Shown here: positions 4,138-50,521 of the stretch, one piece after another | Layout: each line of letters starts with the position of its first letter | Numbering within the stretch: position 1 is the stretch's first letter | IMG/VR virus record: IMGVR_UViG_3300032236_001850 | Span: 124,001-188,000 of that record | DNA length: 64,000 bases | Direction: 5' to 3' (one strand) | Notes under the pieces: generated by a model | What the model was told of the DNA's origin: nothing | The model's input: only the letters and a program-made list of their open reading frames with translations | Databases searched by the model: none | Made by a program: the position numbers and the translations under genes

Positions 4138-4773
4138 ATGAGAAAAGCATGCATCGTGTTATTTCTTTTGGTTTTTGGAGTGATTAATGCTCAAGACACC
4201 ATAAGACTTAAACACACAAACTACACTGCTGTCTACAGCAAGACTTTAAATTACCCAGTACTTGTTGAATGGTGGGAAACCAAAGCAAAGGACGGATGTC
4301 CAAGCCCATTAAAAAGAAAAGATGAATTCAAACCAGATCCGCTTCTACTTAAGGAGACAGATATAGCGAAGGATTATGTTGGATCAGGGTATGACAGGGG
4401 ACATATGTGCCCAGCAGCTTCCAATCTATGTAGTGGTGATAAAGTTCAATCTGAATGCTTCTATTTCAGCAATATGGCACCGCAGCTTCACAGATTAAAT
4501 GCTGGAGATTGGAAAGTATTAGAGATGAAAACAAGAGAGATAGCGATTGCTAATGACAGTGTACATGTTTGGTGTGGTAGCTTGGGAGAGATTAAAAAAG
4601 TTGGTAAGATATCAATACCTAAAACCTGTTGGAAAGTGGTTTACATCAAGAAAACAAAAATCTTTACAGCATACATTTTCAATAATGATGATTCAAAACC
4701 AGACGGAATAGAAAACAATATAGTTCCTCTGGAAGCAGTAGAAAAATTAACAGGATATAAATTTAAAAGGTAA
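4138..4773 (+). CDS. DNA/RNA non-specific endonuclease (NucA/EndA type) with signal peptide
   Basis: YDRGHMCPA motif, FYFSNMAPQ, LNAGDWKVLE; hydrophobic N-terminus ending VINA-QD. Confidence 0.92.
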   Translation: MRKACIVLFLLVFGVINAQDTIRLKHTNYTAVYSKTLNYPVLVEWWETKAKDGCPSPLKRKDEFKPDPLLLKETDIAKDYVGSGYDRGHMCPAASNLCSGDKVQSECFYFSNMAPQLHRLNAGDWKVLEMKTREIAIANDSVHVWCGSLGEIKKVGKISIPKTCWKVVYIKKTKIFTAYIFNNDDSKPDGIENNIVPLEAVEKLTGYKFKR

Positions 4774-4806
4774 AAAAAAGGCTGATATCAATATCAGCCT
4801 TTTTTT
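4773..4806. terminator. Bidirectional intrinsic terminator
   Basis: A7-GGCTGATAT-caa-TATCAGCC-T run between convergent genes. Confidence 0.85.
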
Positions 4807-5569
4807 ATATCATTCCAGATTTTAGTTTTCTACCTATTTTTCCGTAATCTTTTAACCCTGTCCTTTCCAATACTCCAGCCTTAAATTTCTCAAGATTGTC
4901 GATCTTATAGAGTTCCAATGGATTTTTCTTGAAAAAATTATCAATATCCTCAAGAACATCATAATTTATAGGATCGCCGATTTTTAATTTAAGTATGTAC
5001 TCTAGATATTTTCTAATGAAATTGGAATATTCCGGAAGATGTAATTTTTTACTCTCCAAACCAGCATAAGTCATATAAAATCTACCCCCATATTCTCTAA
5101 AAGCTAATAAAATTTGGGATATAATAAGATGAAAAATATAGTTATTATCTCCGCTAACCTCTATTTGTCTCTCCCCAGCTTCATCAGTTCCTATATAATC
5201 AAATTTATTCTCGTCAGATTCGCCAATTACAAATCTTATTTTATAAACATTTGAACCTGATCCAAGACCAGGAGAGCAACTCATTATTTTTTCATTGGGT
5301 TCTGGGTTTAGAGCCTGGGTAAAAGCATAACTTATTGTTCCCCAAAGGAAATATGTATTTAATATAACATCAAGTGTCTTGAGCCCATTTGATTTATAAT
5401 CATAGATATCACCAGCATCATAATTAGGAAAAACATGTAGACCAACAGCTTGAGAGTGATTATTTTTATCCACTCTAAAAGTTATACATTTTTCCAAATA
5501 ATGGTATATTGGAATACGATCAATTGATTCTGATTCAAAAAGTTGATCAAAGGATTTTATTATTTTCAT
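4805..5569 (-). CDS. Hypothetical protein, CTS-like leader plus TGIKD module
   Basis: MKIIKSFDQLFES; ends RTGLKDYGKIGRKLKSGMI. Confidence 0.85.
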   Translation of the reverse strand: MKIIKSFDQLFESESIDRIPIYHYLEKCITFRVDKNNHSQAVGLHVFPNYDAGDIYDYKSNGLKTLDVILNTYFLWGTISYAFTQALNPEPNEKIMSCSPGLGSGSNVYKIRFVIGESDENKFDYIGTDEAGERQIEVSGDNNYIFHLIISQILLAFREYGGRFYMTYAGLESKKLHLPEYSNFIRKYLEYILKLKIGDPINYDVLEDIDNFFKKNPLELYKIDNLEKFKAGVLERTGLKDYGKIGRKLKSGMI

Positions 5570-6684
5570 TATATGAGCCCTCCTCTTAATTTTCTACCGA
5601 TAGCACTAAAATCTTTAATCCCAGTTCTTCTTAAAACACCAGCTTTATATTCTGGATAATCATCAAGTAAATAAAGATCCGTTGGATTTTTTTTCATATG
5701 GTCATCTAGGATTTTTTCAACTTCGGAACTCAAAGATGAACCAAGAAGATAACTTCTAGCAAAATCGGTGAGCAAATTGGATTTTTCATTCATATCTATA
5801 TAGTTTTCACCTATATAAATATTCAAATGTTCGATTTCCGTAGTGATTATCTTCTCTATTTCTTTAACCACCTCATCAATAGTTTTATAACCAAGATAAA
5901 TTTTAATATCTCTCATCTTTTTACTACGACCATGAAGATCAAGGTTTCGATCGACATTTTTGCTTGTTACCTTTTTACCTTCCCCTTTCGGTATAATTCG
6001 GATTTCATTTGCATTGGTACCAATCATGTATTGATTATTGTTTCTTTTTACAGCACCGCTTATTTCCAATATAAAATCAGGGAAAATACGTATGCCAGCT
6101 AAGGCCAAATAACGAAAATTTATCACAATCCCAGCATTTTTACCTTGCATATAAATACCACTAATCGAATTAATATGATCTATCAATTTGGATTTACCCT
6201 TGATTAAAGAGAAATCTGTTATGATGTCGCTTCTTCTTTCTTTTCTGTATACAACATATAAATCGATTGGGAGTTCCCATATCTTGGAAAAGATGAAAGC
6301 ATCATCGTCAACAAGCTCTTTTGCTTCCTTCCTATTGAAATCATTAGGTGCAAACTTATAAACAATATCTCTGATGAAAGTTTGAAGCAGATCCACAAGA
6401 TTCGAAGAGTATTTCATACCGTAATGGCTCCCACTTGAAACAAAGGTAAAGTGCCAATCGCTTCCAGATTTATAAAAGTATGGGCTGCCCGGATTGTTAA
6501 CATAGTCACTGGTGTTTTTGTTTATCAACACATTTATTCTACCGGTTCTTGTTGGGTAAAGTCTATACCATTTTTGAATTTGCTCGAGTTCTCTAGTTCC
6601 TTCGGCTAGTCTGAAGAACTCCTCACAGTCCTCATTCATTTTGGCTGCTTCAAAAAGTTCATTAAAAGTTTTAATTATTCTCAT
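5569..6684 (-). CDS. Hypothetical protein, CTS-like leader plus TGIKD module
   Basis: MRIIKTFNELFEA; ends RTGIKDFSAIGRKLRGGLI; GATATATA at 6689-6696 (minus). Confidence 0.85.
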   Translation of the reverse strand: MRIIKTFNELFEAAKMNEDCEEFFRLAEGTRELEQIQKWYRLYPTRTGRINVLINKNTSDYVNNPGSPYFYKSGSDWHFTFVSSGSHYGMKYSSNLVDLLQTFIRDIVYKFAPNDFNRKEAKELVDDDAFIFSKIWELPIDLYVVYRKERRSDIITDFSLIKGKSKLIDHINSISGIYMQGKNAGIVINFRYLALAGIRIFPDFILEISGAVKRNNNQYMIGTNANEIRIIPKGEGKKVTSKNVDRNLDLHGRSKKMRDIKIYLGYKTIDEVVKEIEKIITTEIEHLNIYIGENYIDMNEKSNLLTDFARSYLLGSSLSSEVEKILDDHMKKNPTDLYLLDDYPEYKAGVLRRTGIKDFSAIGRKLRGGLI

Positions 6685-14357: not shown

Positions 14358-15179
14358 TTATTTTGTTCCAGTTGAAAGTCCAAATGCTGCCTGAGCGTCC
14401 TTTGCATTAACGTCTCCTCCATCCTCGCCGAAAAATTTTCTAGCCCCACTTACTATTTTACCCAGTAATCCTCCAGGATTTTCCTTTGCATCTTTCTCAT
14501 CATTATTAGAAGTTGCAGAGTCACCTCCGATAATATCATCTCCAGGTAAACGTCTTTCTGCATTATCCTTACTAACATCAATCATATCTTTCTTAACAGC
14601 TTCAGTGAAGCTATTATCAAAATCGCTACTTCTGTCCGGGAAGTAATCTATAAATCCAAGAAGACCGTCAACTAGGACAGATCTATTATATGCACCTACA
14701 CCCTGTCCGTCTTTTAGTCTAACATTACCCTCAATTGTTGTGAATTTCTTACCGTTATAATCAACACTAGTAACTATTCCAGCATGACCACCACCCTCTC
14801 TTTTTGCAATCATTATTTGACCAGGTTTAACTAGAGAAAAATTAGATCTTGCCTGATCTGCAGTTATCTTTTTACCCCCGGTTTTTTCCCATTCCTCCAA
14901 TGCAGAACCAGTTTTATATACTGGATTGGTGATTCCACTTTTTTTACTGAACTCGTCAAAAATATAGTAAATGAAAGCCATACACCAAGGCTGACCGTCA
15001 CTTATTCCTACTGATCTCTGAAATTTATTAACATCGGAACCACTATTGTTACCGACCTCCTTCGCTTTTATATTATTTGATATAACCTTAGCTAGCTCAG
15101 ATCCAGCTCCTGATGGATTATCTAATTTGAATCCGGAGTCTTCATTTATAAATTCATTGAAACTCTTTAATCTTTCCAT
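14358..15179 (-). CDS. CHAP-domain peptidoglycan hydrolase with CTS-like leader
   Basis: GQPWCMAF (Cys), GGHAGIV (His), TIEGN; leader MERLKSFNEFINE. Confidence 0.88.
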   Translation of the reverse strand: MERLKSFNEFINEDSGFKLDNPSGAGSELAKVISNNIKAKEVGNNSGSDVNKFQRSVGISDGQPWCMAFIYYIFDEFSKKSGITNPVYKTGSALEEWEKTGGKKITADQARSNFSLVKPGQIMIAKREGGGHAGIVTSVDYNGKKFTTIEGNVRLKDGQGVGAYNRSVLVDGLLGFIDYFPDRSSDFDNSFTEAVKKDMIDVSKDNAERRLPGDDIIGGDSATSNNDEKDAKENPGGLLGKIVSGARKFFGEDGGDVNAKDAQAAFGLSTGTK

Positions 15180-15704: not shown

Positions 15705-15735
15705 AAAAAGTCCGATATTGCTATCGGACTTTTTT
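15705..15735. terminator. Bidirectional intrinsic terminator
   Basis: A5-GTCCGATA-ttgc-TATCGGAC-T6. Confidence 0.85.
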
Positions 15736-16414
15736 ATGCGGTTAGTGTTTTGTTTATATTGTTTATTGTTGATGTTAATTTTCTTTCGTAATCTGGAGCT
15801 GAAGCATATCTCTGATTGTTTACATTAACAAACTTTTTTAATAACTCAGGAGCAGTTTTATTCTGGGAAGGAACCACATAACTCTTAGCCATTGTTCTAT
15901 AGTAAGCATCGATACCAGATTGCCAATCATTATGGTTAACAACTGCACCGCTATCAACATTACCAACATTGAATGGATTTTTAGTTCTGATTGGTTTATT
16001 TGATGTGTCTCTACTTAAACCACCCTCCAACGTTAACTGAGCTAAAGCAAGTTGTGGAGGAATATAAGCACCGTGATCCATCACGGCCTTTTTCGCACCG
16101 AGGGCTAGCATTTCACCTTTTATTGGGGATGATGGATTAGTTTTATCAATCCATTTTTGAGCAATATCAGCATAAGCTTTAAATCCTTCAGAAGTTTTAA
16201 GATCCAACGGTGTAAAAATGCTTCCGTCATTAACATTATTTAGACCCAAACTCTTAAGAGCTATTTGATCCGCGGTGTCAGGAATGTCAAGATTCAAAGA
16301 ACCTGTTCCGGTGGTATCGCTATCTGATTTAGCATTAAGTGCATTACTAATTAATAAGGCAGGGTTAAAATCCATCTCATTAATAAAGTCACCAAAAGAT
16401 TTTATGTTGTTCAT
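15734..16414 (-). CDS. GH73 glucosaminidase with CTS-like leader
   Basis: LAQLTLEGG, NPFNVG, YASAPDYERKL; probable start MNNIKSFGDFINE at 16414. Confidence 0.82.
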   Translation of the reverse strand: MNNIKSFGDFINEMDFNPALLISNALNAKSDSDTTGTGSLNLDIPDTADQIALKSLGLNNVNDGSIFTPLDLKTSEGFKAYADIAQKWIDKTNPSSPIKGEMLALGAKKAVMDHGAYIPPQLALAQLTLEGGLSRDTSNKPIRTKNPFNVGNVDSGAVVNHNDWQSGIDAYYRTMAKSYVVPSQNKTAPELLKKFVNVNNQRYASAPDYERKLTSTINNINKTLTA

Positions 16415-18874: not shown

Positions 18875-19228
18875 ATGAGAATTACATCTAAAGACCTAGT
18901 AGGTAAAACAAGAGGAAAAGTAAGGGACTGGATTTGTGAGGAGGTATTATCTTCTTTGACAGATGAAACCATCTATTCACCAACCCAAAATGATGAGGAT
19001 GGTCACGTCTACGAAATCAAACTTGTCATTAACGGGATTGAGGTTGAACCTAAACTTCTACAAAGGTTATACGATGGAATAGAAAAAATAGTTGATGACG
19101 AAGCTGCAATTATTGCTGACAATAAATTGAAGGATGCACTAAGCAGCATAGATACACTTCACGAAGTCATCAAAGAAGCAGAGTATAAAATTAGAGACAA
19201 ATTTAACATCGAAGATAAAGAATACTAA
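18875..19228 (+). CDS. Hypothetical protein
   Basis: 117 aa, operonic. Confidence 0.8.
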   Translation: MRITSKDLVGKTRGKVRDWICEEVLSSLTDETIYSPTQNDEDGHVYEIKLVINGIEVEPKLLQRLYDGIEKIVDDEAAIIADNKLKDALSSIDTLHEVIKEAEYKIRDKFNIEDKEY

Positions 19229-36148: not shown

Positions 36149-36771
36149 AAAGTACCAAATTACTTAGAGTTGTAAGAACTGGTGAAATAGTAAAGATCTT
36201 ATGGAAAAATGATCTTATGACAGCATATAATAAAGCTGCTTGTGATAGTAATGGCTATTCATATTACAATATACTATCGGCAACACAGATTCCTGGTGTT
36301 TTCATACCCAGAGAAACACCAATAAAGGTTAAATACCTAGGACCACATCCAAATGGACAGGGCTCTTTGCATGAATGGATTCCAGTAAGGACAGACGAAT
36401 ACGAAAACATAGAATTATCAGAAGAAGAGGAAAAGAGAGAGCTGGAAAGATTTGAATGGGAAAAATTTAGATTCTCTATGACTGACGATCTAATATCAAT
36501 AACGAAATCCATAGTTAATGAATTTCCAATGCTCCGAGGTCATACATGTATGGTTCACGACGAGGACATAGATAGAACAAACAAGTATGATGGAATATAC
36601 ATTTACCCAGACGGTAACAAATATGAGATTCTCAGAGTATATCGGAATGTAAGGGTTACTATACCAAGAGGTGGGGGACTAGCAATATGTAATTTCAACA
36701 TGGAGGAAGAGTTTGATAGAAAAATATTAACAGGTAACAAAAAAATAGAATGGCAGAAGATAGAAGACTAG
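36145..36771 (+). CDS. Hypothetical protein, C-terminal WQKIED
   Basis: ATGA coupling. Confidence 0.8.
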   Translation: MKSTKLLRVVRTGEIVKILWKNDLMTAYNKAACDSNGYSYYNILSATQIPGVFIPRETPIKVKYLGPHPNGQGSLHEWIPVRTDEYENIELSEEEEKRELERFEWEKFRFSMTDDLISITKSIVNEFPMLRGHTCMVHDEDIDRTNKYDGIYIYPDGNKYEILRVYRNVRVTIPRGGGLAICNFNMEEEFDRKILTGNKKIEWQKIED

Positions 36772-37475
36772 ACAGCATCCTAGACAAGATCAGTAAAAGT
36801 GGAATTGATTCACTATCCAAGGATGAGAGATCGTATCTCAGAAAGATCTCGGGAGAACCAGAACCGAAATTAGATACAAAATTAGTATCCAATCCAAATG
36901 GTTTTAGAATGGCTAACATCAGTTCCGATGTGGAATCGACTGCTGATTGTGTTGCAGCTCTTAATGAATATAAGAACTCAAAATGGAAAAGAAAAACCAA
37001 GTTCAATATCAAGATAACCCCAGAGGAAAGCAGCACGGTTAGAGTATTTACCGACGGTGTGGAAACATTGTCAATTCTGCAATCGCCTAATGATGGAGCA
37101 TTCCTTATCAATTATGATCTTGATACTCTAAGACCACTTATAGAAAAATTACAAAAAACAGCAAAGAAATGCTACACTCATGATTATGGCCAGGTTTATC
37201 TAAATCCGTGGAGCATGAGCGTATGGGTTGTTGGTGGTGATGGTGGAATTGTTCAAACTGATGATAAACCGTCCGATGTAGTAAAAAGATTAGATGAGGG
37301 TGATTGGGGTGACTGTGAATTTGATATTGATTTCAGTGTGGATGCACACGAAATAAAAGACACCATATTGGAAGCTGAATATTTCCCTGCAATGGACGAG
37401 GATTCAGAATACGACGACAACAAAATGGAGTGGATAGAGGTTGCTAGAACAATAGATATATGTAACTTTGAATAA
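36750..37475 (+). CDS. Hypothetical protein
   Basis: LDSILDKISKSGIDSLSKDERSYL helix motif; 22-nt overlap start. Confidence 0.82.
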   Translation: MAEDRRLDSILDKISKSGIDSLSKDERSYLRKISGEPEPKLDTKLVSNPNGFRMANISSDVESTADCVAALNEYKNSKWKRKTKFNIKITPEESSTVRVFTDGVETLSILQSPNDGAFLINYDLDTLRPLIEKLQKTAKKCYTHDYGQVYLNPWSMSVWVVGGDGGIVQTDDKPSDVVKRLDEGDWGDCEFDIDFSVDAHEIKDTILEAEYFPAMDEDSEYDDNKMEWIEVARTIDICNFE

Positions 37476-39516: not shown

Positions 39517-39885
39517 ATGATTAAGAAATACGACGATTTTATTAATGAATCAATAGGTTCCACATTCACACCTGAACAGCAGGAAATCATAAAAAATTTT
39601 GCTAAGGATCTGGAAAAGGTTTCATTGTATAAAATAAGTACAGAAACAGATAGTTCAAAATTTGAAATAAAGATGAATAAGTATTCTAATTTGTATGAAT
39701 ATGTCTATTCATGCTACATCAGCAATCGTATTTTATATCTAAGAAATTATAAAAGAAGAACATCGGGTTCATTAAGAGGTGTTATCTCTAATTTTCATGA
39801 GGAGTCACCAGAATCTCTAGAGGATGCATTGGGTATTATTGCAAAGAATACAGTTAAACAATACGAATTTAAAAGAATAAAATAA
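39517..39885 (+). CDS. Hypothetical protein, CTS-like leader plus FKRIK tail
   Basis: MIKKYDDFINES...YEFKRIK. Confidence 0.8.
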   Translation: MIKKYDDFINESIGSTFTPEQQEIIKNFAKDLEKVSLYKISTETDSSKFEIKMNKYSNLYEYVYSCYISNRILYLRNYKRRTSGSLRGVISNFHEESPESLEDALGIIAKNTVKQYEFKRIK

Positions 39886-39892
39886 TAGAATC

Positions 39893-40039
39893 TTATTTTT
39901 TCTTTCTTTTTTTCTTACGTTTAATTCTAACACAATTAGGAACTATCCTACCATCCAGTTCTTTAGTGCCTATCTGCTTAAATCCTACCCAGCATGGATC
40001 ATTCTTTTCGGCTAAAAATTCATCAAATTTTAGTATCAT
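39893..40039 (-). CDS. 48-aa CTS-leader peptide with CW...NCV motif and basic tail (not in ORF track)
   Basis: MILKFDEFLAEKNDPCWVGFKQIGTKELDGRIVPNCVRIKRKKKRKKK; TAATG coupling to 40039..40620. Confidence 0.8.
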   Translation of the reverse strand: MILKFDEFLAEKNDPCWVGFKQIGTKELDGRIVPNCVRIKRKKKRKKK

Positions 40040-40620
40040 TAGTCTTCTATTTTTTTAAATTCTCTAATCGAATTTTCATCAAAAATTGCAACATTCTTGC
40101 TTCCTCTTTCAACCAAACAGAATCCATCATAGCCCGATTTTTTAATTGCTTCTAATATAGGAGCACATTCTATGATTCTCCATGCTCCGTGTTTGATTCT
40201 CCAAAGGTAGTGATAAACACTATCACCTGGGTCATCAACATCAAATTCTCTGTCAGTGTCGTAATCATATCCCTTCATACCAGAAGCACTAACAGGTTTA
40301 AATTTGGTACCGTTAGTTTCATCCTCATATCCGCTAACAATCATCTTCTCTATCACACCCTTCAGGTCAAGCTTCTTGGCAATCTTAGGGTCCATAGGGT
40401 CACAAAGGTTAACTCCAGGTTTTAGCCACACTTCCCAAACTGCTCCATCCGGAAATTTTGATCTCTCATCAGCACCAGAAAAATCCTTAGCAAATGCAAG
40501 ATTACTAGTCAGAAATATACAACCACCAAATCTTTTCATTTTAGGTGGGAAATCTCCTTTTCTATTTCCGTGGTACAATCTCTCACCAACGAAAGATTCA
40601 AATAAAGCTATGTGTCTCAT
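40039..40620 (-). CDS. ADP-ribosyltransferase-fold protein with CTS-like leader
   Basis: RLYHG, IFLTSNLAFAKDF, GYDGF...VAIFDENSI. Confidence 0.7.
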   Translation of the reverse strand: MRHIALFESFVGERLYHGNRKGDFPPKMKRFGGCIFLTSNLAFAKDFSGADERSKFPDGAVWEVWLKPGVNLCDPMDPKIAKKLDLKGVIEKMIVSGYEDETNGTKFKPVSASGMKGYDYDTDREFDVDDPGDSVYHYLWRIKHGAWRIIECAPILEAIKKSGYDGFCLVERGSKNVAIFDENSIREFKKIED

Positions 40621-40635
40621 TAATGTATGTTAAGA

Positions 40636-41208
40636 TTAGTATCTATCATCATCATATTTTTCCTCAATCATGAAATCAAAAATATCTTCGTATCCTGAGG
40701 TGTAATCAAGTTTTTTGGCTATATCCTTAATCTCACTATCAGTTTTTCGGTGATTATCGAAAGCTTCAGCAAATTCTTCATTAAATTCTAATTTTGGCTT
40801 CCAATCCATTTTTCTTGCTAAATTGATTGCCTCTATCTCTTTTTGATTAACCGGAGGTGCATCAAAAATTCCAACCTCAACATCCACCGTATCTCTATCG
40901 TAAAGGTACCATCCACACGAATCCAGCCAATCATGTAGTAATTCTTCAAGTTTTTCAGATGTTGCATTTTCTGGAACCTGAAAGTTCCATGGTTCTAAAG
41001 GATTTTCGTCATCAACACCAATCCAATTCGAAAGAACAACAAGAAGCTCGTTGAAATCCTTTTGTAGATTCATACCCTTAGAAACCCCAATTGTTGTAGT
41101 TTCTTCCTCCTCCGGACAATAAAAAAATATTTTTGCCACTATAATTTTACCTCCACCTGAACCCGAGGATTCAGATTCGAATAGTTCATATTTTCTAATG
41201 TGTTTCAT
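40636..41208 (-). CDS. Acidic hypothetical protein with CTS-like leader
   Basis: MKHIRKYELFES; GATATATA at 41226 (minus). Confidence 0.82.
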   Translation of the reverse strand: MKHIRKYELFESESSGSGGGKIIVAKIFFYCPEEEETTTIGVSKGMNLQKDFNELLVVLSNWIGVDDENPLEPWNFQVPENATSEKLEELLHDWLDSCGWYLYDRDTVDVEVGIFDAPPVNQKEIEAINLARKMDWKPKLEFNEEFAEAFDNHRKTDSEIKDIAKKLDYTSGYEDIFDFMIEEKYDDDRY

Positions 41209-41774: not shown

Positions 41775-42125
41775 ATGAAAACAATTAAATTTACATTTAT
41801 TCTTTTAATAACAGCATTTGTTGCAGTATCTTGTGAGAAGCAAAGCAAACCAGTGCAGGAAATATTAAAAACTGACGATCGTAGCGATCTCATTGTTTAT
41901 GGAGATTATGATGACTACGGAGTACATCATGACGACGGTACTGCATTCTATATGCTAAGAACGTGTTATAGAGATTGCAGAATCACTGACTGTGGCACAT
42001 CAGAGTATATTGATAAACTAATCAAGCAAAGAAGAAATGATGTGGTTGCTCTCCAAAAAGAGTATGACTCGCTGGTTCATAAAACTGAAACAGATTACGA
42101 TAAACTAAAAGAAAAAACCGAATAA
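41775..42125 (+). CDS. Lipoprotein
   Basis: Lipobox AVS-C. Confidence 0.82.
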   Translation: MKTIKFTFILLITAFVAVSCEKQSKPVQEILKTDDRSDLIVYGDYDDYGVHHDDGTAFYMLRTCYRDCRITDCGTSEYIDKLIKQRRNDVVALQKEYDSLVHKTETDYDKLKEKTE

Positions 42126-42843: not shown

Positions 42844-43134
42844 ATGAAAAAGATAATCTTATTCTTAGCAATCATCACCCTAGTATCATGCGATGATGGT
42901 ACAAAACCAAAATTTATAGGTCAGGACATCATAGACGGTAAGGTTTCTGCAATAAAACCAGGAACAGCGGGAGGATATGGACATCCAGCGGATCTTCCAG
43001 TCATCTGGGTACAGACACCCACTGAAACAAGAAAGGTTGAAATTCCATTTGAGTATGAAGGAAAATGGAAAGTTGGCGATACCTGTTTACTAATCATAGA
43101 GAGATACGTGGAACCAACAGAGACAACCAAATAA
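42844..43134 (+). CDS. Lipoprotein
   Basis: Lipobox LVS-C. Confidence 0.82.
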   Translation: MKKIILFLAIITLVSCDDGTKPKFIGQDIIDGKVSAIKPGTAGGYGHPADLPVIWVQTPTETRKVEIPFEYEGKWKVGDTCLLIIERYVEPTETTK

Positions 43135-44677: not shown

Positions 44678-46609
44678 TTAGATAAATCCTCTTTTTAATA
44701 ATTTACCAATCTTTCCGGCGTCCGTTATTCCAGTTCTTTTTATAACACCAGCTTTTACATCAGGATGCGAGTCTAGCATATAAATATCCAATGGCATCTT
44801 TTTAAAATAATCATCCAAAGCAGAGTCACCTATAATCGAATCAAGAAGCGTAAATGTTTCCGGATGTTCCTTAAAAAACTCTATAAATCTACCCACATCC
44901 CATCGACCCTCATTCTGCATAATATATTTTTTACCATTTATATCAAATGAAAAATACTCACCAATCTCATCAGGTAACCCCTTAAGTGATTTCAAATTGT
45001 TACCTGTACAAATAAAATATCCTCCGACCTCCCCCGGTGCTCCTTCTAAGGATTCAAGATTGTTATCATAACATTGGAAGCTTCTACCAACGATTTCAGG
45101 TGCTCCCTCCAGAGTCTTTAATTTGTTTTTTGCACACACAAATGAATTCTGGATTTCCCTAGGTGCTCCCTTCAATGACACAAGTTTGTTATCATTACAA
45201 AAGAAGCCAAAGGAAAATTGAGGTGCTCCCTCCAATGAGGTTAACTCGTTACTGGTACAACTGTATTCACCCTCAACTATCTCCGGACCTCCTTTTAATG
45301 ACTTCAGCTTGTTTTCTTGACACTCAAACCTACCGGCCACCGTTCTAGGTCCTCCCTCCAGTGATTCTAGTTTATTCTTATTGCAAGTGAAATTACCATT
45401 AACAATTTGAGGTGCACCTTCAAGGGTTTTCAAATTGTTGTCTGAACAATCGAAACCATCCACCGTTTGTGGTGAACCTATTAACGATTCTAGATTACTA
45501 TTATTACAAGCTAAACTTTTCACTTTCTCTGGTGCTCCCATCAGGTTTTTTAAATTGTTGTATGAACAATTGAAACCACCATCCACCGTTTGTGGTGCTC
45601 CTTTTAGTGATGTTATATTATTTCTAGAACAGTTGAAATCTCCAGTAACGTGACCAAATTCAATGCCTTGGAAATTTCTTATTCCCCAGTCATTACATCT
45701 AAAAGTTCCTTTTATGTCCACAAGTCCAGTCTCCTCATTTATTTTCCATTCCCCACTAGTGCACTCGTTCAACCATTTAACTTTATTCGATTCCCTTCCA
45801 GTTCCACTAAGATCTTTAATTCCGGTTCTTTTTAGCACACCACTCTTTAAATCGGGAAGGTCGTCTAGTAGATATAAGTCCTCAGGATTCTCAGTGAAAT
45901 GATTGTCAAGTATATTCTCAATTTTTTTACCGTTTACTATTCCAAGATCGGAAAGACATGTCATCACATCCATATCATCTAATTTAATAGCGATACGAAC
46001 AAGGTCAGCAGCAAGATCAGATTTTATCTTAGAATTAAGAACAACCCCAGCTTTAATACCAGGAATTGACAGCAGAAATTCAAGTTGTTTGAATTGTCTA
46101 TAAATTTTGTAAATACCAGAATTTCCAGTAGGAAATCCTCTACTGTCACTGTTTGATGATGTTCTTAATTCTTCCTTAGATAGCTTATCTAGGATTCTTT
46201 TGATCGAAAGATTTAGTCCATAGAATTGTCCATTAAAAACAGCTTCCTTCAATGTAGAATATGAGATCTTTGAAACATATGTCATTTGTGCAATACTATA
46301 CAATATCAACTTTGTCATTGCATCGTTCATCTCCTCTTGTGTGGAGAAAGGCATATCTTTCTCAATTGTAAAACTTCCATAAATCAGGTTGACCTTTCCA
46401 TCACCGGAAGGCTTTAATGAACATGAGTAGGAGGTTCCAAAATTATATTCTCTCACCCCCAGGGAACTACTCTTGGCACCATCTCCCAAAAATTTCCTAG
46501 CCTTCTTATAAATAGGAAGTTTACTCAATGTTTCAAAAGACGGAAACTCCTCCTTGTCCTTTTTGGTTGCGCCTTCAAACAACTCATTAAATGTTTTTAT
46601 TCTTCTCAT
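44678..46609 (-). CDS. Chimeric LRR protein: CTS leader, domain, TGIKD module, 22-aa LRRs, second TGIKD module
   Basis: About 11 repeats of CxxNxLxSLxGAPxxVxGxF; module at ILDNHF...RTGIKD and at the C-terminus. Confidence 0.88.
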   Translation of the reverse strand: MRRIKTFNELFEGATKKDKEEFPSFETLSKLPIYKKARKFLGDGAKSSSLGVREYNFGTSYSCSLKPSGDGKVNLIYGSFTIEKDMPFSTQEEMNDAMTKLILYSIAQMTYVSKISYSTLKEAVFNGQFYGLNLSIKRILDKLSKEELRTSSNSDSRGFPTGNSGIYKIYRQFKQLEFLLSIPGIKAGVVLNSKIKSDLAADLVRIAIKLDDMDVMTCLSDLGIVNGKKIENILDNHFTENPEDLYLLDDLPDLKSGVLKRTGIKDLSGTGRESNKVKWLNECTSGEWKINEETGLVDIKGTFRCNDWGIRNFQGIEFGHVTGDFNCSRNNITSLKGAPQTVDGGFNCSYNNLKNLMGAPEKVKSLACNNSNLESLIGSPQTVDGFDCSDNNLKTLEGAPQIVNGNFTCNKNKLESLEGGPRTVAGRFECQENKLKSLKGGPEIVEGEYSCTSNELTSLEGAPQFSFGFFCNDNKLVSLKGAPREIQNSFVCAKNKLKTLEGAPEIVGRSFQCYDNNLESLEGAPGEVGGYFICTGNNLKSLKGLPDEIGEYFSFDINGKKYIMQNEGRWDVGRFIEFFKEHPETFTLLDSIIGDSALDDYFKKMPLDIYMLDSHPDVKAGVIKRTGITDAGKIGKLLKRGFI

Positions 46610-48050: not shown

Positions 48051-48683
48051 ATGAAACACATCCATACATTCTCACAACACATCAACGAGAGCTCCTCTCA
48101 GGAGATCATGGACTTCTGCAAGAAGTACAAGATTTCAATTGAACAGTTTAGAGGACAGGAGGAAATCCCAGGTGATTTTAGAAAACTTTCAAATCTAAAA
48201 TCCATTCCTTCAGGTTTCAACCCAAAGGTTGAAGGGAATCTGACTCTTTCCTCGATTTACAGCTTACCTGATGGGTTTTCACCCGTTGTTGGTGGAGATC
48301 TGGAACTGCATGAACTGAATCATTTGCCAGAGGGATTCTCACCCACTGTGGGAAGAGATCTACATCTGAACTATCTAAATCGTATTCCATATGAATTCAC
48401 TGTTAATGTGGGAGACAATCTGATTTTAGATAATGTGTATGAGGTTGGGAAGGGATTCTCACCCACTGTGGGCGGCAATCTGGATCTAGGATCACTCAGA
48501 ATTTATGCGGAAGGATTCTCACCCATCGTGGGCGGGAATCTAATCTTAAATAAAATGGAAAGCATTCCGCTAAAAGGTGTTTCGCTAAAAGGAGTTAAAG
48601 GAAAGATAGAACTTTTTCACAATTACAATCGTGTAAATCTAGAAACCATAGCGGGTGATATAAAATGGATCAAAATAAGATAG
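48051..48683 (+). CDS. CTS-leader/WIKIR protein with 22-aa LRR-like repeats
   Basis: Repeats LxxLPEGFSPxVGGDLxL; DNA repeat ggattctcaccca about every 66 bp. Confidence 0.85.
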   Translation: MKHIHTFSQHINESSSQEIMDFCKKYKISIEQFRGQEEIPGDFRKLSNLKSIPSGFNPKVEGNLTLSSIYSLPDGFSPVVGGDLELHELNHLPEGFSPTVGRDLHLNYLNRIPYEFTVNVGDNLILDNVYEVGKGFSPTVGGNLDLGSLRIYAEGFSPIVGGNLILNKMESIPLKGVSLKGVKGKIELFHNYNRVNLETIAGDIKWIKIR

Positions 48684-50065: not shown

Positions 50066-50521
50066 ATGAAACACATACACACATTTCACCAACACGTCAA
50101 CGAATCCCAATCTCTACCTTCAGGGGTAAGCAAGGTGACAGCCGATGAGTATACAAAACAAAAATGTGTTCCTCTATCCCAGGAGGAAACTGAAAACATC
50201 TTATTCTTAACTAATATAGTGGAACTTGCTTCTTCGACAGATCCACAGAGGAAAAACGCGGATAGCGAGGACAATCAGATCTATCTTTGCGCTGGTTTTT
50301 ATCCTTATGGAGCTATTCCGCCATGGGCATTCTTCGGAAAGTCAAAGTCAGGAATTTACTATCTATCAGCTAATCCCACACGATTAACGGACACAGAAGG
50401 CCAGGAAAGCAACTATTACGCTGCAAACTCATTGCAACCTCTAATTTCAATTGCTCTTGATATGTTCATTAAACTTGGAATGGTTGATACCTCCGGAATC
50501 AGCTGGATCGAAATCAAGTAA
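50066..50521 (+). CDS. CTS-leader protein ending WIEIK
   Basis: MKHIHTFHQHVNES...ISWIEIK. Confidence 0.85.
   Translation: MKHIHTFHQHVNESQSLPSGVSKVTADEYTKQKCVPLSQEETENILFLTNIVELASSTDPQRKNADSEDNQIYLCAGFYPYGAIPPWAFFGKSKSGIYYLSANPTRLTDTEGQESNYYAANSLQPLISIALDMFIKLGMVDTSGISWIEIK

Follow-up and report, generated by a model that had tools for sequence, protein, structure and literature searches.

The window analysed here is a 64,000-nucleotide stretch of DNA corresponding to bases 124001-188000 of the virus record IMGVR_UViG_3300032236_001850, which comprises 434,509 bp with direct terminal repeats. Its minus strand carries an open reading frame (ORF) of 48 amino acids (aa), the subject of this report, which joins a leader resembling the capsid-targeting sequence (CTS) of phage T4 internal proteins to a hairpin module with two cysteines and a polybasic tail. 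We tentatively read its product as the precursor of a small peptide packaged in the phage head. The following features were assigned to the locus.

39893..40039, minus strand: the 48-aa ORF, 144 nt plus a TAA stop at 39895-39893; sequence identical to that given in an earlier note on this DNA
40007..40039, minus strand: leader, residues 1-11 (MILKFDEFLAE), 7.6 bits on the leader profile, predicted cut after E11
39929..40006, minus strand: two-Cys hairpin module, residues 12-37 (alignment A1, PHROG matches, AlphaFold2 (AF2) model)
39896..39928, minus strand: polybasic tail, residues 38-48, K/R at 10 of 11 positions, predicted disordered (sequence and AF2)
40037..40041, minus strand: TAATG stop/start overlap with the upstream gene, read directly from the sequence
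40039..40620, minus strand: upstream 193-aa gene with a leader of 14.8 bits and an ADP-ribosyltransferase-like fold (profile and structure model)
40636..41208, minus strand: 190-aa gene that opens this minus-strand run and whose N-terminus resembles the leader (8.6 in a position-matrix scan)

The ATG of the 48-aa ORF (40039-40037) overlaps the TAA (40041-40039) of the 193-aa ORF (40039..40620, minus strand), and the resulting TAATG junction is, by its sequence, typical of translational coupling. A convergent gene ends 7 nt downstream of the small ORF. Versions of 44-48 aa with 86-94% protein identity are encoded on three related metagenome contigs, where the differences between relatives are mostly synonymous; the ratio of non-synonymous to synonymous substitution rates (dN/dS) was 0.05, 0.15 and 0.11 in three pairs, the window differing from contig L006 by 11.5 synonymous and 3.5 non-synonymous changes (dN/dS 0.05) and giving a dN/dS of 0.15 against contig L004. 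Contigs from four pond and viral-metagenome runs revealed a single change, D6N, and an A-rich tail region without indel or slippage. Since related contigs keep the ORF, the differences are mostly synonymous and the tail shows no indel, comparative sequence data indicate that it is a real gene under purifying selection and not a chance ORF. The earlier note, made from the letters of this DNA, had described a hidden peptide; ORF and sequence proved exact, but 'hidden' says too much, gene callers having already predicted the protein in public data.

The polybasic tail that the note had pointed out is present, though variable in length and sequence among close relatives, which end in RKKKRKKK here, KKKGRKK in P0004 and SKKK in P0005 while staying basic in all cases; among 34 proteins in which the module comes last, 11 have a comparable basic tail. 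As the note had proposed, cleavage (here placed after E11) would leave a peptide of 37 aa, for which an isoelectric point of 10.6 and a net charge of +11 were computed. A Pfam search with the ORF and nine neighbours gave nothing above cut-off for the ORF, its sole match (P311) being at chance level.

The leader family and the prohead protease

Many nearby ORFs start alike, and therefore the 652 ORFs of the genome were called and a leader profile was built from their N-termini. Only N-termini of this genome entered the profile, and matches of at least 8 bits were counted as hits. The family consensus after Met is KNIKTFSDFINEAK. Hits were found at 53 of 652 ORF starts of this genome vs. 2 of 4599 internal 24-residue segments. 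Elsewhere, the same threshold was reached by 4 of 274 ORFs in T4, none of 113 in crAss001 (35% GC, Bacteroides host), 2 of 239 in Staphylococcus phage K (30% GC) and 1 of 318 in PTm1 (30% GC). Base composition is therefore not the source of the leader signal, and an AT-rich composition of start regions as its cause was ruled out by these control phages together with the fact that only 8% of the ORFs bear the leader.

Overall, a leader with the consensus M-KNIKTFSDFINE was observed on about 8% of the ORFs, on unrelated bodies of 46 to 643 aa; examples in the window are the ORFs at 48051-48683(+), 15734-16414(-), 50066-50521(+), 44678-46609(-), 5569-6684(-) and 39517-39885(+). The 48-aa ORF itself scored 7.6 bits (rank 56 of 652), at a background of 0.4% of internal segments at 6 bits and 0.04% at 8 bits.

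Known T4 sequences were scored on the same profile. The T4 CTS, MKTYQEFIAE, reached 9.6 bits, and the four T4 hits were a 54-aa ORF at 18966-19130, Soc, IPIII and IPII, with 9.7 bits for both IPII and IPIII and IPI following as ninth at 4.8; the match to Soc is probably due to chance. The 54-aa ORF (NC_000866, 18966-19130, minus strand; locus L022), which starts MKTFKEFIKE, tops the T4 scores with 12.3 bits, above IPII and IPIII. In phage K (KF766114), which is without an S77 protease, the ORFs at 108307-109578 and 124351-124527 start MDFNQFINNE and MDFNDFINSE and scored 11.5-12 bits.

A T4-type CTS is an N-terminal propeptide of 10-19 residues. In the CTS of IPIII, residues 4 and 7 are the main determinants of targeting and residues 8 and 10 those of processing (PMC9026906). 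Residues F5, F8, L9 and E11 of the 48-aa ORF lie one position further along than their T4 CTS counterparts Y4, F7, I8 and E10, so that the near-T4 leader proposed in the note was borne out at all four functional positions. Among the family seeds (n = 34), column 7 is F or Y in every sequence, and the processing positions are occupied by I/F/L/V in 27 and by E in 23; the positions functional in the T4 CTS are thus the conserved columns of the leader family.

A protease of the required type is encoded in the genome. A 654-aa ORF adjoining the major capsid protein gene is a fusion of an S77 (T4 gp21-type) protease with a scaffold (PF03420, 36.3 bits; PHROG 207, E 5e-40). On a 520-kb metagenome contig of a related huge phage (L016:13279-19825), the protease-scaffold and Gp23-type capsid genes are immediately followed on their strand by three leader-bearing genes (133, 490 and 186 aa), one of which has an NFACT-R domain. 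Two leader-bearing peptidoglycan hydrolases (CHAP and glucosaminidase) were also recorded in the window, at 14358-15179 (-) and as another of the 20 ORFs in alignment A3; a leader on such hydrolases would fit head-ejected enzymes.

The two-cysteine hairpin module

In alignment A1, which covers residues 12-37, C16, W17, G24, V33, P34 and C36 are invariant and P15, K26, G30, N35 and V37 nearly so. All of the invariant columns (C, W, G, V-P and C) are present in the 48-aa ORF, whose two cysteines are separated by 19 residues. The module matches seven PHROG families of unknown function, including 9737, 28131, 4359 and 727 (E 7e-6 to 1e-2), and was retrieved by tblastn from 365 phage records, mostly of Kyanoviridae cyanomyoviruses, and by phmmer from 684 representative clusters at E<=1e-3. 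These numbers confirm the note's statement that the Cys motif recurs in T4-like phages. The module has no Pfam family; comparison with the PDB gave no match at E<=10 by sequence profile, and by fold only Foldseek hits at E ~1 and nothing at Z>=2 in a wide VIA-align search. Queries with the motif strings and with DUF6321, DUF5872, DUF5824 and DUF5661 returned nothing relevant in the searchable literature. On these sequence comparisons, the module is a phage-specific mini-domain, widespread and catalogued but uncharacterised.

AF2, run on an alignment of 55 sequences, predicted a hairpin of residues 20-28 and 31-38 at a predicted local distance difference test score (pLDDT) of 87-90, a helix of residues 5-12 over the leader and a disordered tail. 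A zinc ribbon or knuckle was rejected as a description of the fold, which would need four Cys/His in one domain where the module offers two Cys and no His; a zinc site may be shared between two module copies. An alpha-defensin-like hairpin was likewise discarded on account of the two Cys vs. three disulfides, a Foldseek E of ~1 and the lack of any VIA-align match at Z>=2.

The 151 proteins surveyed hold 208 module instances, 156 of them internal and often two or three per protein. Stand-alone versions of 40-75 aa form many clusters of about 100 members, and in the near-orthologues P0050 and P0065 an MI-type leader like that of the 48-aa ORF comes with 200-280 additional residues. Among the fusion partners are DUF6321, DUF5872, DUF5661/HD, cytidylyltransferase-PAP2-DUF5824, DUF3721, NTP transferase and XkdF-type prohead proteases. 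A leader-like sequence stands before 33 of 52 N-terminal modules vs. 16 of 156 internal ones; on the leader profile at the 8-bit threshold, the corresponding numbers are 19 of 51 and 6 of 156. In phage PANV1, whose genome encodes an S77 protease, gp34 consists of a leader and two modules; the PANV1 paper reported no virion proteomics. The genome studied here holds a single copy of the module.

A link to virions is provided by the cyanophage family T4-GC119 (PHROG 727), which carries the module in S-BM3, ACG-2014d and S-SM1. Mass spectrometry of purified S-SM1 virions identified both T4-GC119 (13 peptide counts) and the cytidylyltransferase T4-GC190 (25 counts; PMC3037559, Table S8); in phage Melnitz, the module sits on a cytidylyltransferase-like protein. 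Detection of T4-GC119 gives indirect support to the reading of a head-packaged peptide. The position of T4-GC119 between g16 and g17 was rejected as evidence for a structural role, since Sullivan et al. describe this region as a hot spot in which a cassette may be mobile. T4-GC119 and the multi-module proteins with DUF6321, DUF5872 or DUF5824 have the Cys-Trp ... Val-Pro-Asn-Cys hairpin in common with the 48-aa ORF. They differ from it in being mosaics of 90-990 aa with an internal module, which in the S-SM1 copy is a variant ending in N-R-C.

The coupled upstream gene and the source genome

For the 193-aa protein encoded upstream, more than 150 homologues at 57-84% identity were found on contigs of up to 523 kb, with an invariant YHGNRKGDFPP stretch right behind a variable leader. 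Its structure was modelled confidently (pLDDT 91), the leader being unstructured, and its best structural matches were all ADP-ribosyltransferase folds at middling Z of 5.3-7.3, among them the catalytic domain of diphtheria toxin (Z 7.3) and a domain of a cyanophage A4 pre-ejectosome chain (Z 7.1), as well as RES, ParT, MbcT and Tpt1. By these matches of the model, the protein would lie on the H-Y-E-like side of the fold, together with diphtheria toxin, RES and Tpt1. Beyond close relatives, the small ORF no longer accompanies the 193-aa gene, which in contigs of the 520-kb class is followed by an unrelated 88-aa gene.

The T4 head packages an ADP-ribosyltransferase, Alt, from which a short propeptide is cleaved off. 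The 193-aa protein resembles Alt in its predicted ADP-ribosyltransferase fold, in the short N-terminal leader and in the presence of a gp21-type protease in the phage. It differs in size (193 vs. about 680 aa) and in the H-Y-E-like character suggested by predicted-structure matches.

The window has a GC content of ~35-42% and densely packed small ORFs; it contains no tRNA genes, and an alternative genetic code is unnecessary for reading its genes. In its major capsid protein, the phage shares 44-45% identity with Prevotella Lak megaphages and with a 462-kb uncultured phage, Tenacibaculum phage PTm1 and Flavobacterium phage MaF61 being more distant kin. By sequence relationship, the source phage is a Lak-related megaphage, and near-identical DNA was found in pond and viral metagenomes of four studies. 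Two tandem portal paralogues (G000:C1:282552-284186 and 284191-285843, corresponding to L008:2552-4186 and 4191-5843; PHROG 213, E 3.5e-55 and 5e-68) form part of the head module. The DNA of the 8-kb neighbourhood gave no match to known phages, and terminator and promoter scans revealed sites no commoner than in shuffled sequences. At window 36750-37475 (+), the N-terminus of a 241-aa ORF matches Pfam DUF6576 above cut-off (31.4 bits, E 2e-7), and the small ORFs at 42844-43134 (+) and 41775-42125 (+) encode signal peptides ending in a Ser/Val-Cys lipobox-like motif. A Bacteroidota host fits these lipobox-like signal peptides and the relatives of the capsid protein.

A candidate head-packaged peptide and its alternatives

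The gene is real and constrained, its leader matches the functional positions of the T4 CTS, a protease gene is present in the genome and the module is conserved. We tentatively favour the reading that the 48-aa ORF encodes, by analogy with T4, a small internal head protein that would be cut after E11 to a head-packaged 37-aa peptide of charge +11; our confidence stays somewhat short of even because every functional step, namely packaging, cleavage, DNA binding and ejection, is inferred by analogy with T4. In such a pathway, the N-terminal amphipathic leader with its aromatics F5 and F8 would dock the precursor on the prohead scaffolding core, and the gp21-family (S77) protease would cut after L9-A10-E11. 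The freed peptide of 37 residues (4.4 kDa, net +11) would remain in the head, where the rigid Cys16...Cys36 hairpin and the lysine-rich tail may bind packaged DNA and neutralise its charge, and it would go into the host along with the DNA. Mature T4 heads keep fragments of 2.5 and 3.9 kDa, and lysines of T4 internal proteins contact DNA phosphates. Supporting context is given by clusters in which the module is fused to XkdF-type prohead proteases, and by the position of the ORF in an operon of leader-bearing genes, including that for the Alt-like ADP-ribosyltransferase fold.

Several observations weigh against this reading. The leader of the 48-aa ORF is weak (7.6 bits, with 0.4% of internal segments reaching 6) and two residues shorter than the family consensus. 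A leader-like stretch also stands before 6-16 of 156 internal modules and AF2 places a helix beside the hairpin, so the stretch may be part of the module and not an address tag. Fifty or so packaged proteins would be an unusually large set, PTm1 lacks a leader family despite its S77 protease, and the locus was found in no RNA run. As T4-GC119 is built of several modules, this one may have no part in bringing it into virions; moreover, T4-GC119 lies in a possibly mobile cassette, the g16-g17 region being a variable hot spot (Sullivan et al. 2010).

The most serious alternative, which we consider rather doubtful while giving it a real chance, is a product that never enters the head: a small protein of the cytoplasm that binds nucleic acids or acts in host takeover, its helix being an uncleaved hairpin cap or an interaction helix shared by a large paralogous group. 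Such a protein would accord with the leader-like stretch directly before some internal modules, with the predicted helix at residues 5-12 adjoining the hairpin, with the fusion of the module to many enzymes of cytoplasmic type (cytidylyltransferase, PAP2, HD and NTP transferase) and with a neighbourhood that, like early regions, is rich in small genes of unknown function. It is less easily reconciled with a leader that is strongly specific for N-termini (53 of 652 starts vs. 2 of 4599 internal segments), occurs on unrelated bodies and agrees with the T4 CTS at its functional positions, or with a profile that recovers IPII and IPIII of T4; moreover, T4-GC190, a member of the cytidylyltransferase family, was itself found in virions. 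In another possible explanation, the hairpin acts as a portable tag that docks on the capsid interior, the portal or DNA and normally travels with cargo, the 48-aa ORF being a minimal or decaying cargo-less form with little function of its own. The preponderance of internal instances (156 of 208) within larger proteins, often in 2-3 copies, the 200-280 more residues of the near-orthologues P0050 and P0065 with their MI-type leader, and the occurrence of one module copy only in the genome speak for such a tag, but the dN/dS of 0.05-0.15 indicates constraint on the short form, stand-alone versions of 40-75 aa are found in many clusters of ~100 members, and the tail is basic in all close homologues; we regard this explanation as improbable. 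Least credible of all is a membrane-active, defensin-like cationic peptide for lysis, entry or the exclusion of other phages, to which we attach very little weight: the peptide is cationic and has a two-Cys hairpin, and alpha-defensins head the Foldseek rows, but these matches have an E of ~1 over 22 residues and VIA-align found nothing at Z>=2, defensins need three disulfides where the peptide has two Cys, a hydrophobic face and a signal peptide are missing, and the module usually lies within large, soluble, highly charged proteins. The membrane-penetrating role that the note had offered as an option is accordingly unsupported, the defensin-like fold matches standing at an E of ~1.

Like the T4 internal proteins, the head-packaged peptide favoured here would begin as a precursor with a short propeptide at its N-terminus, in which two aromatic residues at a spacing of three are followed by I/L-x-E, and would have a mature part that is basic and rich in lysine; in both cases the genome encodes a gp21-family protease, and diverse, unrelated proteins have only the leader in common. 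The peptide differs in a mature part of 37 aa vs. about 76-183, in the lack of sequence similarity to any T4 internal protein, in a leader offset by one residue (three in the family consensus) and in about 50 family members vs. three; the phage is a Lak-related megaphage, not a member of the Straboviridae. The T4 head peptides (the 2.5 kDa gp22 and 3.9 kDa gp67 fragments) are made by the prohead protease and kept in the filled head, and their size is similar to the 4.4 kDa predicted here. These T4 peptides are acidic fragments of core proteins, whereas the peptide here would come from a gene of its own and carry a strongly basic charge. The adenovirus core peptide mu, a very basic short peptide, is freed by the virion protease and condenses packaged DNA; it provides a functional analogy only, virus, protease and sequence being unrelated.

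What is new in the present case is that, in a Lak-related megaphage, a minimal hairpin peptide bears a CTS-like leader and is encoded by one of a family of about 50 leader-bearing genes; the theme is that of the T4 internal proteins. In a wider and more speculative form, which we hold to be unlikely, the peptide would be one of about fifty leader-addressed capsid proteins, including the ADP-ribosyltransferase-fold enzyme and two peptidoglycan hydrolases, that make up a very large injected arsenal, and the hairpin would be an unrecognised portable DNA-anchoring module in many phage lineages.

The 37-mer can be synthesised, so its DNA binding, disulfide state and cleavage by the protease are directly testable without phage culture. 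If the reading is true, the T4 capsid-targeting system, known from a few internal proteins of T-even phages, would work in uncultured megaphages on a scale far beyond this, the unknown megaphage genes whose products reach the host could be predicted by a simple sequence rule, and a common unnamed mini-domain (684 clusters) would gain its first testable role.
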